A stretch of DNA of 63,344 bases, the filler included, from Octopus bimaculoides (lineage: Eukaryota): NCBI RefSeq assembly GCF_001194135.2. It is 6 parts of 5 records of this genome, joined end to end, with 100 filler letters (N's around TTAATTAATTAA, not from the genome) between each part and the next. Parts side by side here need not be neighbours in the genome. Positions count along the whole stretch, not along the records: positions 1 to 20,667 come from NC_068985.1; 5 more parts are not named here. One strand, given 5' to 3'. The position numbers and the translations under genes were made by a program. The notes beneath the pieces were generated by a model. That model ran no database searches and had not been told where the DNA came from. It saw nothing but the letters and a program-made list of their open reading frames with translations. Of the stretch, positions 1,933 through 20,711 are shown piece after piece (positions within the stretch are counted from its first letter, which is position 1; the number at the start of each line of letters is the position of its first letter).

Positions 1933-4380
1933 CTATTTACATAAGTATGTGAAAACATTCATGATTATATTTTTGTGTTTACATTTTTAACCAACATGAA
2001 TTACATGAAATGTCCAAACAACAGTAATGAGATGAAATGTTAGACCATTTTCAATCGTTAGAAATTGTGCAACGTTTGATATTCTCATCACGGAATTAAT
2101 AAACATAACTGTTCATTTGAAAATTTTAAATTCCTACTGGACAAAATCGCTTTTTTTATATGAGTCGTTTTTTTACTGATTTTACTTTTGATATTTAAAT
2201 ATTGAATCCGCCATTGTCTGAACTATATAAATATGATACTTTTATGGTCGACCGAGCTATAAGATGACGGAACTTATAAGTGATATTAAAGTGGAGGAAA
2301 GCATACTTGAAACGAACTCTTGTTTCTGGCAGATACGTTTACCAAAGAAACTTGGCTTCAATTATCAACTGCTATGAATTCATGAGTTTTCTTCCTCAAA
2401 ACCAGACTACAAAATCTTCTTGTTATAGTCTAAAATTCACATTTGCACTAATCAAAAGTACATTATTCGAATGTTTCCAAATATTCAAGTATTTGCAGTA
2501 TCTATTGCTACTTCAATAAACTATTTGGCTTATGAATATCAAAGTCGATTATTTTGTGTTTAAATGGCCCAACATATTTTGTCGTTCATTTAATCAATAA
2601 GTATCTAATGATAATATGAGTAATTCCTTAATTAAACAAAGTTTATAGCGTAAACTTACACAAAAACTACTGTGAGCATATGAGTGGCATGCCGTGAAGT
2701 GACCATACAATTTTAAATGCTGCTGTAACTGTTATCTTAGAAACCGAATATTCTTCGATACGCTTGTTACAATCTTTTACTCGTCTTGAATATATGAATA
2801 TATGAATATATGAATAAGATGATGAAAGCGAACTTTAAATGATTCTCGATAATTCAAATAAAGTTCTGGGCACATTGCTGTTGCGGTGCTTGTTTTAAAA
2901 ACAGAGTATTATAGAATTCTAAGGATTATTACTGTTAAAAAAATAATTGACTCTATGCATTTGCAAGTAGAAGATACTATACTGTTGCATTTGAAAAGTT
3001 TTTTTGTTTTGTTTTTTTATTTAGTAAAATTATTGTAGAAACTTGCTATTTCGTTACAATCAAAACAGTTTACCTTAATGGAATGTCTTTTAAGAATATT
3101 TTCGGAGTTATATTTCATCAAATTAAGGAAATTACAGTTACCTTACACTCCCATAATTTAAACTGAAACATGGGTTACCCCAAAGCTGTTTCTGAGCTAT
3201 TACTTTTCAAGTTAAGCTCCAATTTTATCTAAAAGTTACATTACATTAGTATTTCAAGTATTCAGTTGATAAGACTAAGAATCAGCATATACACTTAAAA
3301 ATAAACTTTAAAAATTATTAAGCTTAATGGCTGATTCAAGCAACCGTATATTTTCTATGTAATTGAATATTCAGAAAACATGGAATATTAATCTCAATGC
3401 CTCTAAATTTCAAGATTTTAAGGATACTTAATAAGCGCAAGCTATTTCCATTGCCCCATTAGATTTATACATACACGCAATTAATGGGGCCCCTTTTTAC
3501 ATTTTTGCATAAATACACATATTTTTTAGAATCAAATTCGTAAGCTGTTGTCCAACCTAATATAACGTTTTGCCTAATTTAACTTTACTACGCTAAACTT
3601 CAACAGCAAAGTATTTCTTGTTTTTCAAGCAATGATTAAAGTGTCGTGTTATATGAGTCCTCTTTTTCATATCATCAAACCACTGTTCGTTATAAGAAAA
3701 GAAGCGTCTGTGAGTCATAAGCTCATGATGCAGGACCCTATCGCAGGATTAGTCATTTTTGCCAGCTGAATGGAATGAAACAACGTAAAATTATGTGTTT
3801 TGCTTCAAGAACACAGCGCATCACCGGATCCAGGAATCCACGCAACAACCTTACGATCAAGAGTGAAACGCCCGAACCACTAAGCCTCGTGCCTCCACAC
3901 TGTTCGATATGATATTCAAATATATTAATCATATTAATCATACCGATTTGTCAAGCTTCAGCCTTCAATACATTATACATTTTTTGGGAGCGACGGTTAT
4001 TTCTTCTCAAAACGAAGATCTCAGTTGAACGCTTGTAACAAAGGGATCTCCACTAAAGACATCCGAGGATCAGATGGTGGCACTTGCAGCTGCATTTAAA
4101 AGCGCGTGGCATAGTAATTAAGGCGTTGAATTCACGATCATTAGATCATGGGTTCTCGAAGTGGGTAGCACATTGTGTCTTCGGGGAAAGCACTTCATTT
4201 TATGTTTCTCCTGTATATTCAGCTAGAAATGAATGCTAGTTGCACCTATCGGTTAGCACTGTGACGTACTCGTATCCCATTTGAGTGGAAGGCTCACATT
4301 CTCATCTTAAATGCTCTGAAAATCCGATAAAATTCCGGTTCTCATGAAATCTTTAGGTTCGAGATGGACTTTTGATTAGA
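710..4380. repeat. Left arm of a large inverted segmental duplication
   Basis: Reverse complements of the right arm: 711-782~16447-16520; 1145-1720~15865-16450; 2190-2710~14228-14975; 3160-4380~12655-13915. The blocks are collinear and include non-TE unique sequence. Confidence 0.92.
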
Positions 4381-9189: not shown

Positions 9190-9895
9190 AGAGAATAGTA
9201 TCCTACAAACCGACAGGAAGCTCCTCGGGAAACATTCTCTTCCTGAGGACCGCTCATGCAACCCCAAACCAGCCGGTTTAACGTACGTCCAGGATGACAT
9301 GGGTTTGTAATGTTCAGCATTCCCAAAGCAGACCATGCTTGTATTTGTCTTCCGAAGACTCGAAGAAGACACTAATATTGACGTGAAGCAAATCTTGGAT
9401 TCGTGGCCGCTATATTGCATCACATTCGGAGGCTATGCATTTGCAATCCAAGATCAGGAGATTATTATAAAATACCTGATAAACAAAAGAAACAATGAAG
9501 ACCTTGCAGTGCCAAGATGCAACCGGAAATGTAGATTATGTCATATTTCTATGCAAAACATCAAAAATGTGATTAGCAGCAACCCAAAAATGTCATCAGG
9601 GTACTGCCTCTCTATGCGACATGACGTTGTCTCAAAACAACATACAATGCCTTCCGGTGAAAAAGCCCGTCCTGGAATAGAGAATACCCCTGTTATTGAA
9701 TACGTACACAAACATCAACAAACAGAATACTGCTGGAACATTCCCATCAAAACATCTGTCAAGTGTAAGCATAACAGGCCGGATATTGTCGTTTGGGACA
9801 ACAAAGCAAAAGTGTGTGCCGTCATAGAAGTCAGCTGTCCCGCTCCTGTGAATATCTCTTTGAAAATCAAAGAAAAGGAGATTAACTATGGACAA
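9190..9895 (+). mobile_element. 3' fragment of an RLE-clade non-LTR retrotransposon (R4/Dong-like): zinc knuckle plus restriction-like endonuclease
   Basis: ORF 9335.. contains FAIQDQ, CRLC, RHD and HNRPDIVVWD...IEVSCP...KEK (PD..D/E endonuclease). The remainder of the ORF is (ACAT)n microsatellite. Confidence 0.85.
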
Positions 9896-10154
9896 CATAC
9901 ATACATAAGCACACACGCGCGCATGCGCGCATACATACACACACACATACATACATACATACATACATATATAAAGACATACATACATACATACATACAT
10001 ACGTACATACATGCATACATACATACATACATACATACATACATACATACATACATACATACTTACGTATGTAAGGCAGAAAAGATCACAAAGCAGATTT
10101 AAAATAATTGTAATGAGGAAAAGTCGCTGTTAATTTTATTGCTAATATTACTAA

Positions 10155-10540: not shown

Positions 10541-11774
10541 TCAGGTCTTTAATAAGGAAATGTCAGATTTTAAACTGCAACTTTATTTTACTTTATCTCA
10601 ACAAAAAGCAATGCTGTTAATCAAAATATGCACTTAAATTATCAACACAATTTTGCCATTTTATCAGTAGCTTATTTTTGCCGGCAGCGAAGAATTCTGG
10701 AGAGCAAGAGATGATGAAATCACGAAATGCTGTTCTTGCATCTTCTTCAGAATTTAAGTGTTTTCCTTGCAAACATTTGTCTAATGCCTGGAAAAAGTGA
10801 TAGTCAGTTGGTGCAAGGTCTGATGAATATGATGGATGACAGAGTACTTCCAAGTTCAGTTCCTGTAACTTGAGTAGCGTTCTTTGTGCAACATGTGATT
10901 GAGTATTGTCTTGCAAGAGAATCGTCCTGTCTCTGTTGACCAGTCTCGGTTGTTTAATTTTAAGTTCACACATCATTTCATTCAATTGGTTGGTGCATAC
11001 ATCCGCTGTAATTGACTTACCAGGTCTCATCAAGCTGTAGTTGATGACACCAGCGCTGGATCACCAAACAGAAATCATTAGATTTTTCTGGTGAAAATTC
11101 TTTTTAGGATTGTATTTTGGCATCTCGTCCCTATCCAACCACCGTGCAGAATGATTGCTATTGTTGAAAAGAATCCATTTTTCATCACTCGTAAAAATAC
11201 GATGCAAAAATGGTCCGCAGTAATGCCGTGACAGCAACGAGCAGCAAGTTTCAAGACGACGTGTCATTTGATGCTCGTTCTGTTCGTGTGGTACCTACTT
11301 GTCCAGCTTCTTTACCTTACCGGTTTGTTTCAGATGGCCCAATACAGTTGGGATCAAAACATCAATCCTAGCTGCTAACTCACGCGTAGTTTCAGATATA
11401 TCCGCTTCCACTACAGCTTCCAGCTCATCCTTATTCACCTTGGTCTCACGTCTACCATCGACGTACAGTGCGCTCGTTCGTCACATCTTCACAAAACACT
11501 TCATTGATGTTTCGAGCTGTCTGAGATGCATCGGTTCCACGACGAAAGTCCTATTATGAAGAACACGAATTTTTTATCTATCCATGGGTTCACAAAAATT
11601 GATTCACAACAGAAAACTCATAATAAAATGAAACACCATGAATTGCATCTCGAAAAGTGAAAATGTAACTCTTCAATATTGTAAAACAAAGAATTGTCAG
11701 GGAAAAACATTAGATTTAACGTCTGTCAAGCTTGGTGCATAAGAAAATCGGACATTTTATTCTGAATGACCTGA
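10541..11774 (-). mobile_element. Full-length but degenerate mariner (Tc1/mariner, DD34D) DNA transposon, ~1.23 kb
   Basis: Minus-strand ORF pieces 11061-11267 (FLHRIFTSDEKWIL...QKNLMISVW) and 10617-11033 (ILLQDNTQSHVA...HPSYSSDLAPTDYHFF...YFD) carry mariner catalytic motifs. Imperfect ~32-bp TIRs: tcaggtctttaataaggaaatgtcagatttt versus revcomp tcaggtcattcagaataaaatgtccgatttt. TA on the left, CA (mutated TA) on the right. Confidence 0.92.
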
Positions 11775-12654: not shown

Positions 12655-15199
12655 AAGTCCATCTCAAGTCTAAAGATTTCATGAGAACCAGAATTCAGGG
12701 CATTTAAGATGAGAGTGTGACCCTCTCATTTGAACTGGACACGTGCGCGTCACAGTGCTAACCGACAGATGCAACTGGCATTCATTTCCAGCTGAATATA
12801 CAGTAGAAGCAAAAAATGAAGTACCTTCCTCAGAGACACAATGTGCTACCCACTTCGAGAATCGAATTCATGATGTAACGATCGTGAATTCAACACCTTA
12901 ACTACAATGCCGTGCGCTTTTAAATGCAGTTGCTTGTGCAAGCATCTGATCCTCGGTGTCTTTGGTGGAAATCACTTTGTTATAAACATTCAATTTAGAT
13001 CTTCGTTTGAGAAGAAATAACTGTCTCCGTTCCTCTCACCGGTGTCAGAGGTCACAGGTGTTATCTGTCTCTCTCTGACTATGCTCTTACTATACAAATG
13101 TATCATTTATTGGAAAATGAAACTTTGCAAACCAACATATTAATATATTTGAATATCATAACGAACAGTATGGAGCCGCAGAGCTTAGTGGTTCAGGTGT
13201 TTCATTCTTGATCTTAAGATTGTTGCTTCTATTCTAGAACCGGGCAATGTTTTTTTTATTCAAAAGCAAAACACATAATTTTACGTTGTTTCATTCCATT
13301 CAGCTGGCAAAAATGACTAATCCTGCGATAGGGTCCTGCATCATGAGCTTATGACTCACAGACGCTTCTTTTCTTATAACGAACAGTGGTTTGATGATAT
13401 GAAAAAGAGGACTCATATAACACGACACTTTAATCATTGCTTGAAAAATAAGAAATACATTGCTGTTGAAGTTTAGCGTAGTAAAGTTAAATTAGGCAAA
13501 ACGTTATATTAGGTTGGACAACAGCTTATGAATTTTACATTTTTGCTTAAATATGTGTATTTAAGCAAAAATGTAAAAAGAGGCCCCATTAATTGCGTGT
13601 ATGCATAGATCTAACGGAGCAATGAGCTTATTAAGTATCTTTAAAATCTTGCAAATTGGAGGCATTGAGATTAATATTCTATGTTTTCTGAATATTCATC
13701 TACATAGAATATATATTGTTGCTTGAATCAGCCATTAAGCTCAATCATTTTTAAATAGATTATTTTTAAGCGTATATGCTGATTGTTAGTCTTATCAACC
13801 GAATACTTGAAATAATATTGTAAGATACCTTTTAGATAAGATTGGAGGTAAAATTGAAAAGTAATAGCTCAGAAACAGCTTTTTGGGTACCCCAACTTTC
13901 AGTTTAAACTACGGGCACATNNNNNNNNNNNNNNNNNNNNNNNNNNNNNNNNNNNNNNNNNNNNNNNNNNNNNNNNNNNNNNNNNNNNNNNNNNNNNNNN
14001 NNNNNNNNNNNNNNNNNNNNNNNNNNNNNNNNNNNNNNNNNNNNNNNNNNNNNNNNNNNNNNNNNNNNNNNNNNNNNNNNNNNNNNNNNNNNNNNNNNNN
14101 NNNNNNNNNNNNNNNNNNNNNNNNNNNNNNNNNNNNNNNNNNNNNNNNNNNNNNNNNNNNNNNNNNNNNNNNNNNNNNNNNNNNNNNNNNNNNNNNNNNN
14201 NNNNNNNNNNNNNNNNNNNNNNNNNNNGTATGGTCACTTCACGGCATGCCATTCATGTGCTCATAGCAGTTTTTGTTTAAGTTTACGCTTTAAATTTTGT
14301 TTAGTTAAGGAATTACTTATATTACTTTTAGACACTTATTGTTACGACAAAATATGTTACGCCAATTTAAACAAAACATTTTTCATTTTGATATTACATG
14401 GTCAAAAACCAAATGGTTTATTGAAGTAGCCATATACAGGGTGTCCACAAGGTCTGGGTACATGGAGTAAATAAAATCATAACATAAACAATTAAATATA
14501 AGAAATAATAATTTCTTAAAGTATGCGTAAATCCCCATGTGGGTACATGGAGCAAATAAAATCATAATATAAACAATTAAATATAAGAAATAATAACTTC
14601 TTAAAGTAGGTGTTAATCCCCATGTACCCAGACTTTGTGGACACCCTGTATAATACATATACTTGAATATCTGGAAAAATTCGAATAATGTACTTTTCAT
14701 TAGTACACCTATGAATTTTAGACTATAACAAGAAATCTTTTAATCTGATTCGAAGAAAATAAACAAACGGGCAAAATGTGAGGCAGAAAACTTATGAATT
14801 CATGGCAGTTGATTATTGAAGTCAAGCTTCTTTGATAAACGTATCTGCCAGTAACTAGAGTTCGTTCCAAGTATGCTTTCCTCTAGTTTAAAATCAGTAA
14901 CTAATTCCGTCATCATATAGCCATGTCGACCATAAAACTATTGTATTTGTATAGTTTAGACAAAGGCAAATTCAACTCTTTTAGTACTCTTTTACTCTTT
15001 TACCTGTTTCAGTCATTTGCCTGTGGCCATGCTGGAGCACCGCCTTTAGTCAAGCAAATCTACCCCAGGACTTATTCTTTGTAAGCCTAGTACTTATTCT
15101 ATCGTTCTCTTTTGCCGAACCGCTAAGTTACGGGACGTAAACACACCAGCATCGGTTGTCAAGCGATTTTGTGGGGGACAAACAGACACACAAAGATAT

Positions 15200-17143: not shown

Positions 17144-17231
17144 ATGCTAAGGCTCATTCATTGGCTCTTTCTCATATGTGTAGGACTCGGGGTGAGAGCT
17201 GGCCCCCCATATTATTATAGAACACCAATCG
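17144..17231 (+). CDS. First coding exon (signal peptide) of a secreted Kunitz/BPTI-domain protein: MLRLIHWLFLICVGLGVRA-GPPYYYRTPI(E)
   Basis: Pyrimidine tract and acceptor tttaccttttcAG at 17137; exon starts at 17138; ATG at 17144; hydrophobic h-region with G-V-R-A cleavage-like end; strong donor G|gtaagt at 17231/17232; phase 1, joining in frame (G+AG=Glu) to the exon at 19399. Confidence 0.85.
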
Positions 17232-17479
17232 GTAAGTGATCTTGATGAAAGGAAAATTCTTTTTATATCCCTCCCTATAATGCACGACTTCAGTCTTTAG
17301 ATGAATTACACTCATTTCAAGCACACACACACACACACACACACACATAGACATGTATATGTCTGTTTAGTGAAGAAGGAGTAGTGAATACCAGAGTAGA
17401 AATTAATATTTGTTATTTTGGTCGAGTCAGTAATAACTTGCTTGAAGCCCAGAGTAGCAAGAGGCTGAGTCGACCAACA

Positions 17480-17831
<352 letters not shown>

Positions 17832-18755
17832 TTCTTTATCATCCACTCAGGGCTTAAATGAATAAAAACAATAAGGACGGTACAAACGGTACAGGATGGT
17901 ACAGAGTGGGTTTTGGCGTGTAAAATTCATAAGAAATATAAGAACAAATGCGGAAAAAGTAAATTCCTCAATAGGAGGGCGTACTTCCGAGGGTCACACA
18001 TAGAGAAAGACCACAAAAATTCACGATCACTCGGACCGCCAAGGTCAGTGCCCTCTCACAGTCTTCTCCCTCCAATCTACAGGCGCATACTCAGAGCAGG
18101 CCCATTAATTCGGGTGGTGCTCGTCTCTCTCAGCAAACTGCGTGGAAGGCAGCACTTCCCTCTCTACCTTGATTTTTTCCTCTTCAAGTGAAACCTGAAA
18201 AAGTTAATCAGGTCTTCGCTGATAAGGAAAGTGCTGGCCTTCACTCCTTTCAGACTGGGATGCGGCGGGTAAATTTTCGCAATGGACTCAGCCGATAGCG
18301 GGAACCTTCCTACATGTGATTGCAAGTGTTCGGCATAAACACACAAGTCAACAATGTTCAGACACTGGACGAGGGCGTTCAGGACTGTTTCGTCACCCTA
18401 CGCGCAGCTTGGACAAGCTCGACTGACGGCACGTCCATACCTGTAGAGTCTATCTCGAACTGGCTGTGCTTTCCCGTAGCACTGCCAGGCTAGGGATTTC
18501 TGGAAGTTATCTATGGGCCCTGGACCGAAAGTCCTCCGGAACAGACTGGCCAGTTGATTCTTGTTGACACCCATAGTCACCCAGTGAACGCCATCGCTTT
18601 TGTCTTCCACTAACCTTCTTTGGAACGCCAAGGTGGAGCTTCCACTGATCGTTCTGCCCAACTGGTTGAGGCCTGTAATCGCTTGAAGACATTCCAGTTT
18701 CCAAGTGCTTCCTCTCGATTTTCGTTTGACCCAGGACTGTGGCTCCGACAAGGAT
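17832..18755 (-). mobile_element. L1/Tx1-clade LINE 3' fragment, antisense in the first coding intron of the Kunitz gene
   Basis: Minus ORFs: KSLAWQCYGKAQPVRDRLYRYG...ACPSC (zf-RVT-like) and LINFFRFHLKRK. The 3' end (...gataaagaaat) runs into an (att)n tail. Confidence 0.75.
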
Positions 18756-18853
18756 AACGTATGTCTCTCATTGTCTGTCTGTCTGTCTCTCTCTCTTTCT
18801 GTCTGTCTGTCTCTCTTTCCCTCTCTCTCTCCCTCTCATTCTCTCACTCTCTC

Positions 18854-18887
<34 letters not shown>

Positions 18888-19010
18888 GCTCTCTCACCCT
18901 CTCTCTCGCTCGCTCGCGCTCTCTATTCTTTATATTCTTTATATTATTATGCATAACCATAATTGTTTTCTCGAATGACAGTTCTAAAATACAAACGTAT
19001 TTGCGTGTGG

Positions 19011-19060
<50 letters not shown>

Positions 19061-19398
19061 GCATAGGTATGTATGTGTGTCTCTCTCTCTCTCTTTCTTT
19101 CTCTTTCCCTCTCGCTTTTTCCTCTCACTCTTTCTCTCTCTCTCTCTCTCTGTTACTCTCTCTCTCTCTCTCTCGTCATCTATCTATCTATCTATCTATT
19201 CTTTATTTGTATATATATTATTATGCAGAAGCGCGATTTTTTTCTCGTTCGAATGATGATAGTAGTTCGGATCCTGATTTTTATCATCTTAATTTAGACA
19301 CACATGGATTGAAAATATCAAATTATATTAGTAAGAAGTAAATACAAGTAAATACCAATTTGAAACGAATAAAGAATTTTAATGCTTTGAATTTTTAG

Positions 19399-19609
19399 AG
19401 TGTGGATTACCAAAGGATGGGGGATCCTGCACACTCCCATCCAGTTTACGCTGGTATTTCGATACAAAATCCAGAACATGTAAGACGTTTCAATTTACAT
19501 GTGGAGGAAATGGAAATAATTTCCGGTCTTACGATGAATGCATTGGAGTGTGTACAAATATCTGTTTTTTGCCTATAGGATATGGAACAGGTTGGCAATC
19601 TATTAATAG
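19399..19609 (+). CDS. Exon encoding a complete Kunitz domain plus the N-terminal part of a second Kunitz domain: (E)CGLPKDGGSCTLPSSLRWYFDTKSRTCKTFQFTCGGNGNNFRSYDECIGVC-TNICFLPIGYGTGWQSIN(R)
   Basis: Manual translation from acceptor atttttAG|AG (19398) to donor AG|gtaaag (19609/19610). Six cysteines, RWYFD and CGGNGNNF motifs and the final C-x3-C match the BPTI/Kunitz signature. C-x2-P-x3-G restarts a second domain at 19563. Confidence 0.92.
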
Positions 19610-20321
19610 GTAAAGCATTTTCTTTTAAATTCAATCCGTTCGTTTCTCGTTTTTATTTGTTATTCATTTTAAAATGCTTTTGTGGTTATCTATATCGATA
19701 AAATTCAAAGTATATGTAAACTTGGAGGGTCCAATATAATTAAACGTTTGTTTTTTTTTTTGTTTGTTTTTTTTTTTTGTTTTTTTAAGAATATTTTGGT
19801 ATAACATCTCGCAACAATTTTCATGAAACATCAAATTGCTAATGCTTCGAAATTATGCAAAAATATCCTTTCCTTTTATTATGACTCAAACATCACAGGA
19901 TATTTTTTAACTACTTTCTAATTGAATGCAAACATACAAACGACCAGGAAATAATTTTTAAAAATCGACGGAAGTAAAACTCTGTGCCAATGAAATAATT
20001 TCTTCTTCAGTTTTTCTTCAGATTTTAAATAAAACATGCAAGTGAAGGACGAGTGCAAACTGGCGTGTTAATTAAAATTCAACATAGTTTAACATATTAT
20101 TAGTAATTAATGTTATAGGAAACGATGAAAAGGGCTGACACGATAGAGTGCCAGATTACAAATTTTGTGGCATTTAGCCGTAAGATTAGCCATATTCTGA
20201 GCTTAATTCAAGTTGAATTTATTTTAAAGTGGTCCGGCGACTGGTAAAATAAGTTCCAGTTACAGTACTGTTGTTGATTCAGTAGCGTGTACTTATTCTC
20301 TAAAAGTTGAGTCATTTAGAG

Positions 20322-20618
20322 CAGGGGTTTTCAAACTTTTTGACTTGCGGACCCCTTTATATTTCAGGCTTTACCTTAGGGACCCCCTTATAAACGCTTA
20401 TGAAATTTATACATAAATATTTGCTTAAAATAACATATATTTTTACATCTATTTATTTAACAGTATTTAACAAATAGGTTTATTGTCAATTAAAAGATTT
20501 CGATTAAAAACCATATATAAAATCAAATTGCCCATAAAAAGTATTTGCTGTCCACGGACCCCCTGTCTTGTCCTGGCGGACCCCCTGTGGTTCGCGGATC
20601 ACAGTTTGAAAACCCCTG
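20322..20618. mobile_element. hAT (Charlie/Buster-type) MITE
   Basis: 16-bp TIRs caggggttttcaaact / agtttgaaaacccctg; 8-bp TSD atttagag / atttagaa. Confidence 0.88.
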
Positions 20619-20711
20619 ATTTAGAACACAACATCCTTCAAAGGCGTAGTCAATATGAATTGCAGAANNNNNNNNNNNNNNNNNNNNNNNNNNNNNNNNN
20701 NNNNNNNNNNN

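Follow-up and report, generated by a model that had tools for sequence, protein, structure and literature searches.

The window analysed here is a stretch of 63,344 nucleotides (filler included) from the genome of Octopus bimaculoides, of which positions 1 to 20,667 come from NC_068985.1. This piece is draft octopus DNA that is rich in microsatellites and contains several N gaps. It carries the first two exons of an annotated three-exon gene on chromosome CM046605.1 (assembly GCA_001194135.2), and matches this chromosomal locus with an offset of 7143 (Table 1). The gene encodes a secreted protein of 194 aa, here called P0014, that begins with a signal peptide and continues with three Kunitz domains, between which lie linkers of three residues. 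In order, these are D1 (residues 31-81), the linker TNI, D2 (85-135), the linker MSV, and D3 (139-189), followed by a short basic tail. NCBI names this protein 'actinia tenebrosa protease inhibitors [Octopus bimaculoides]'. When 1.84 billion representative proteins were searched exhaustively with the 70-residue exon 2 product, P0014 was the sole protein that covered its residues 1-70, with 100% identity. Literature searches for this gene found no paper.

Table 1. Coordinates of the tri-Kunitz gene and its parts. Positions are those of the window except for exon 3.
Feature	Position	Strand	Content	Basis
Exon 1	17144..17231	+	Start codon, signal peptide, short N-terminal stretch; residues 1-29 and first base of codon 30	tblastn of P0014, sequence read, joined-exon translation
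Exon 1 donor	GTAAGT at 17232	+		Sequence read
Intron 1, phase 1	17232..19398	+	Microsatellites and AT-rich trinucleotide run inside	
Exon 2, 211 nt	19399..19609	+	Completes codon 30; Kunitz D1, TNI linker, first 16 residues of D2	
Kunitz domain 1 (D1)	19401..19553	+		PDB sequence matches, profile alignment
Kunitz domain 2 (D2) start	19563..19609	+	Cys I, Gly at Cys II, Trp at P1, split Arg codon at end	
Intron 2 start, phase 2	19610..20667	+	GTAAAG donor; intron extends past end of piece	
Exon 3	L001 15599-15884, ~2.1 kb beyond window end		Rest of D2, D3, stop	

Translation of 19401-19613 gives a complete Kunitz domain, then TNI, and then C-F-L-P-I-G-Y-G-T-G-W-Q-S-I-N-R. The Cys I codon of this second domain (TGT) begins at 19563. 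The last base of the exon is 19609 and the GT of the donor is at 19610-19611, so that the segment 19563-19609 makes up the first 15 2/3 codons of D2. The exon 2 donor reads AG/GTAAAG and the exon 3 acceptor (...tgtttgcag/G) is pyrimidine-rich. The codon for the Arg at the end of the D2 start is split: its first two bases, AG, belong to exon 2 and its last, G, to exon 3. When the three exons are joined at these canonical GT-AG sites, the resulting 585 bases encode exactly P0014. The junction between exons 2 and 3 is based on the NCBI model, on the canonical splice signals, and on conservation in paralogues. A scan of the window found no further Kunitz exons, and the remainder of D2 lies outside the piece.

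A paralogue, P0153 (186 aa), is located approximately 10 kb downstream on the opposite strand, in convergent orientation (L002 10001-15428). It is the only other copy that was mapped, and it has the same three-exon structure with an intron at the identical position inside D2. Octopus sinensis contains the copies P0152 and P0012, the latter lying in synteny at the orthologous locus and sharing the signal peptide of P0014. In this locus (L003 15000-22000) the piece that carries the D2 start, together with the exon 3 segment, occurs three times in tandem. P0012, which is 451 aa long and called 'papilin-like' by NCBI, reads through all three tandem copies, and this gene model is probably a read-through of tandem duplicates. 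Its D2 copies have five Cys, with the additional one at core position 31. In one O. sinensis D3 copy, core Cys residues have been lost. Papilins carry, besides Kunitz repeats, an ADAMTS-like cassette that has thrombospondin repeats. We rejected a papilin identity here: P0014 and P0012 consist of a signal peptide and Kunitz domains without thrombospondin repeats, and PF00014 is the sole Pfam family on record for either protein.

The initial annotation had considered that transcripts might be spliced at a weak donor at 19590/19591, in which case the segment would not begin a Kunitz domain. There is indeed a weak GT at 19591-19592, and the probable read-through in P0012 would be consistent with a gene-model error. 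The annotated splice, however, uses the strong donor at 19609/19610, and a reading of the sequence indicates that the weak donor would place exon 3 out of frame and lead to a stop 19 codons past the junction. The donor and acceptor described above, the exact and open product of 194 codons, and the occurrence of the same junction in P0153 also argue against an error of this kind. It is thus extremely unlikely that the segment owes its Kunitz reading to a gene-model artefact, whether through another donor or exon or as part of a pseudogene.

We aligned the D2 start to a profile that represents 1090 canonical Kunitz domains with six Cys. It fills core columns 1-16; the Cys II column holds Gly, and the column that follows, P1, holds Trp. 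This confirms two claims made in the initial annotation: a second Kunitz domain starts here, and it has Gly for Cys II and Trp at P1. It had also been proposed to check whether Cys IV is replaced. The joined-exon product has Val in the Cys IV column of D2, where D3 and canonical domains carry Cys. The signature of P0014 D2 is CGCVCC, with four Cys versus the six of a canonical PF00014 domain. From this pattern, D2 lacks the II-IV disulfide and is predicted to retain the Cys I-VI and Cys III-V pairs. The Cys II-IV disulfide joins the two protease-contact loops of a Kunitz domain and stabilises the binding loop. Since P0014 D2 contains neither Cys II nor Cys IV, no disulfide ties its two protease-contact loops together.

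Despite the two missing Cys, the whole of D2 matched the six-Cys profile over columns 1-51 with 47.0 bits (i-E 2.8e-14). This score, together with the presence of the remaining part of D2 in the exon 3 portion of P0014, means that the match of the D2 start is not due to chance. The 18- to 21-residue D2 start alone, a segment too short for such a search, had no match among solved structures. An AlphaFold2 model of P0014, made with a 30-sequence alignment, had a mean pLDDT of 88.3, with the D2 blocks at 88-93. In this model D2 is predicted to form a β-hairpin (98-104/109-115) and a helix (128-135), which is the Kunitz fold. By its cysteine pattern and predicted structure, therefore, D2 is a genuine two-disulfide Kunitz domain with an otherwise intact fold. 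Kunitz domains have typically been defined by three disulfides (I-VI, II-IV, III-V), of which D2 is predicted to form two; this is a recognised variant within PF00014, the family precomputed for P0014, and does not exclude the domain from it. P0014 D2 is also strongly basic, with 7 Lys/Arg versus 1 acidic residue.

The D2 signatures of the Octopus copies are CGCVCC in P0014, CGCECC in P0153, CGCDCC in P0152, and CGCKCC in P0012. Gly is found at Cys II in all D2 copies and P1 is always aromatic, either Trp or Tyr. Five D2 copies keep the whole scaffold: four Cys (I, III, V, VI), the Gly residues of core positions 8 and 10, the motif G-x-N-x-N-N-F, and the YYFNKK strand. The net positive charge of D2 is not common to P0153 or P0152. 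A word-indexed search restricted to D2 returned three Octopus proteins only, and the collection searched contained no close relative of 107-340 aa outside Octopus. Among the matches retrieved, no protein from another mollusc had the two-disulfide variant. The loss of Cys II and Cys IV seen here is apparently confined to Octopus. Between P0014 and P0153, dS was 0.07 in D2 versus 0.4-0.5 in D1 and D3. The low value in D2 hints that gene conversion has acted locally, or else selection.

The two flanking domains each have six Cys. D1 has the spacing C-8-C-16-C-6-C-12-C-3-C, with Thr at P1 in P0014 and either Thr or Glu in the Octopus copies. This spacing is unusual in that one residue is gained after Cys II and one is lost before Cys IV (F-T-C versus the usual aromatic-G-G-C), and it is common to all Octopus copies. 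D1 had strong sequence matches in the PDB to boophilin (9e-16), SmCI (7e-15), and collagen VI C5. D3 is fully canonical, has Arg at P1 in most copies, and gave the top profile score of 70 bits.

We compared P0014 with proteins of solved structure. Using Foldseek with the whole model, the top match was SmCI (4bd9_B; E 6e-17, 40% identity over 166 columns covering all three domains), followed by boophilin, bikunin, and ixolaris. Sequence searches placed boophilin, SmCI, and TFPI on top, and boophilin, SmCI, TFPI, and ixolaris ranked first when the exon 3 part of D2 was compared with the PDB. SmCI, the tri-Kunitz carboxypeptidase/serine-protease inhibitor of the annelid Sabellastarte magnifica, is thus the best structural match of P0014 and the second-best by sequence, and NCBI names the O. 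sinensis homologue after it. Both are small secreted proteins with three tandem Kunitz domains and very short linkers. They differ in that SmCI has Cys in the Cys IV column of all three domains whereas octopus D2 has two predicted disulfides, and in the shifted Cys spacing of octopus D1. Carboxypeptidase inhibition by P0014 cannot be inferred from its likeness to SmCI. The second Kunitz domain of the tick two-Kunitz anticoagulant ixolaris (PDB 6nan) resembles D2 in being a non-first domain of a secreted multi-Kunitz protein and in having Ile in the Cys IV column. Ixolaris comes from another phylum and has another target, its kinship with D2 is limited to the fold that they share, and it differs from the octopus D2 in P1, which is aromatic in the latter. 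Ixolaris binds to an exosite of factor X in a non-canonical manner (PMC9865953).

We wished to know how common the two-disulfide variant is. We retrieved 231 multi-Kunitz proteins and cut them into 1505 Kunitz domains; 140 of these domains, found in 33 of the proteins, have neither Cys II nor Cys IV. Gly occupies the Cys II site in 98% of the 134 full-length two-disulfide domains and the Cys IV site is variable. Among the carriers are nematode multi-Kunitz proteins (from Trichinella, Steinernema, Trichuris, Strongyloides, filarial nematodes, and C. elegans W01F3.3), a mosquito papilin, a gecko five-Kunitz protein, and an Ixodes protein. The variant also occurs in the middle domain (K2) of TFPI-2 from the fish Brienomyrus. 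Sister TFPI-2 proteins retain the II-IV bond and therefore the loss of this bond is recurrent. The repeats of the nematode proteins, papilins, and fish TFPI-2 are like D2 in having Gly at Cys II and a variable Cys IV site; they differ from it in that their hosts are mostly very large matrix or cuticle proteins. Two-disulfide domains made up 34 of the best 50 non-octopus matches of D2, an enrichment that the shared Gly and missing Cys in part make inevitable. As judged from these sequences, the loss of Cys II and Cys IV recurs across animals and the architecture of D2 is not special. The residue at P1 in the two-disulfide domains outside Octopus is mostly Asn, Thr, Ser, or Lys, and it is aromatic in just 4 of 129. 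Because an aromatic P1 is this rare elsewhere, analogy is little guide to what D2 would target.

The initial annotation had likened D2 to conkunitzin-S1, a K+ channel blocker from the cone snail Conus striatus (PDB 1y62, 2ca7, 6q6c), and had suggested either convergence or an ancient molluscan module; as an alternative it had noted that Cys II and Cys IV are also lost in some non-toxin Kunitz repeats. The likeness lies in a mollusc origin, the Kunitz fold, and the missing Cys14-Cys38 bond. Conkunitzin-S1 does not contain Cys14 (PMC5325619; Dy et al. 2006 as cited in PMC9695905). If D2 were a neuroactive module of this type, whether convergent or homologous, the loss of the II-IV bond would mark a switch from protease inhibition to ion-channel binding. 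Such a switch would be consistent with the shared disulfide variant, with the strongly basic D2 of P0014, with the presence of Kunitz toxins among the sequence and fold matches, and with fast evolution beneath a frozen signal peptide (see below), as is often found in toxin genes. However, conkunitzin-S1 is a free single-domain venom peptide and octopus D2 is internal, between D1 and D3. There are no dibasic processing sites in the TNI and MSV linkers that flank D2. With linkers of three residues and no such sites, D2 is not a releasable peptide of ~60 residues.

The ranking of matches points in the same direction. For the exon 3 part of D2, conkunitzin-S1 ranked only ~19th to 23rd among solved Kunitz domains, behind many inhibitors and with its further entries lower. 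By fold, with the whole model in Foldseek, its entries ranked 30th to 46th. The net charge of D2 is not conserved in P0153 or P0152, and the two-disulfide variant is common in non-toxin proteins. In addition, conkunitzin-S1 and Cys14-less sequences are known to group artefactually in trees of short Kunitz sequences (PMC5325619), which argues against grouping D2 with conkunitzin-S1 by the missing Cys14. Thus, specific kinship with conkunitzins is not supported, given that D2 is internal, has no preferential similarity to them, and shares its variant with unrelated proteins. An ancient molluscan module is not indicated either, as no other mollusc among the matches has the variant. The alternative, a loss of the kind seen in non-toxin Kunitz repeats, fits better. 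These comparisons do not support a conkunitzin-like, neuroactive reading of D2, and we regard it as very unlikely.

The coding regions of the gene (window 19399-19609 and L001 15599-15884) were compared with the orthologous locus of O. sinensis (L003). The signal peptide had 0 nonsynonymous and 3 synonymous differences. By contrast, dN/dS was ~0.9-1.4 in the mature domains and the 15 codons of the D2 start had 12 nonsynonymous and 0 synonymous differences (Fisher p = 0.04), statistics that come from two or three sequences and short segments, with tandem duplicates in O. sinensis, where gene conversion and uncertain orthology can distort substitution counts. The coding exons differed at 83 of 491 sites (16.9%) versus 38 of 547 (6.9%) in the adjacent intron and 3' flank (p = 6e-7). 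Intron 2, which in O. sinensis has an insertion within its last 400 bases, was compared by blastn blocks. Other intron blocks were 88-91% identical, corresponding to 9-12% divergence. In this small sample the pattern points to a mature protein that evolves at an accelerated rate, as is seen in many inhibitor, immune, and toxin genes. Alternatively, values of dN/dS near 1 could reflect relaxed constraint.

Relaxed constraint would be expected if D2 were decaying or served merely as a structural spacer that has lost its loop-locking disulfide and has no binding function of its own. D2 has a dN/dS of ~1 or above in every pairwise comparison, it has lost the disulfide that stabilises the binding loop, and the O. 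sinensis exon 3 copy with a D3 short of core Cys indicates that decay does occur in this family. Neutral decay alone, however, does not predict that the coding exons diverge more than the flanking intron. Nor does decay sit well with five D2 copies that have kept all of the scaffold residues, an aromatic P1, and an intact reading frame, or with the confident prediction of the D2 fold. On this evidence we consider decay of D2, or a spacer role for it, rather unlikely.

Based on these results, we think it likely that the segment is the start of D2 of an extracellular protease inhibitor with several heads, similar in type to SmCI and TFPI, and that D2 is either a weakened binding head with an aromatic P1 or a head that binds non-canonically. 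The protein as a whole would serve as a multi-headed secreted protease inhibitor. D3, with its canonical pattern and Arg at P1, is likely to be a classical trypsin-type head. The contact loop of D2 would be looser, and with Trp or Tyr as its P1 the domain may function as a weaker, chymotrypsin-type head. A cestode Kunitz protein without Cys14 still inhibits trypsin at ~1e-9 M (PMC5325619), which makes such a role for D2 plausible. Alternatively, D2 could be a non-canonical docking head in the way that the Cys IV-less second domain of ixolaris docks on the factor X exosite. The combination of fast-evolving mature domains and a frozen signal peptide would suit a secreted protein that faces changing target proteases, whether digestive or from prey or pathogens. 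A role in holding digestive proteases in check has been proposed for Kunitz proteins of octopus (PMC12032550).

A more speculative proposal is that this fast-evolving tri-Kunitz family is an offensive or defensive component of saliva or venom, and that D2, with its aromatic P1 and without the loop-locking disulfide, has been retargeted to a partner other than a protease, such as an ion channel. We give this proposal very little chance of being correct; if it were, a cephalopod would have arrived convergently, by way of a multi-domain protein, at a counterpart of conkunitzin-S1. The gene is already annotated and the two-disulfide variant is recurrent and well known, so that the finding is mostly one more independent loss of the II-IV bond. 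Its value is that a secreted protein of compact build, with three heads, has fixed this loss, and that the altered head keeps an unusual aromatic P1. The divergence of the coding exons, faster than that of the intron, together with the frozen signal peptide makes the tri-Kunitz family a candidate for a part in an arms race, whether in digestion, saliva, or immunity. The family is worth including in surveys of cephalopod secretomes.

Several other features were observed in the window. Intron 1 of the tri-Kunitz gene contains a long AT-rich trinucleotide run at 17430-17926, and CT/CA microsatellites occupy 18760-19200, just upstream of exon 2. On the plus strand, 9311-10099 is an open frame of 263 codons that enters a microsatellite at its end. 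Its first 190 residues had no match among solved structures, and it is probably not a gene, or is part of a repeat. On the minus strand at 10620-11480 there is a remnant of a mariner-type transposase (Hsmar1/SETMAR-like), the C-terminal 147 aa of which match SETMAR (E 2.6e-41). The frame of this remnant is split into three open pieces, that is, by at least two interruptions, and a search of it against a phage collection gave no match. A dispersed repeat is present in two inverted copies, at ~3150-4376 and ~12770-13920, that are 82-88% alike and lie ~9 kb apart. These two copies bracket the mariner remnant.
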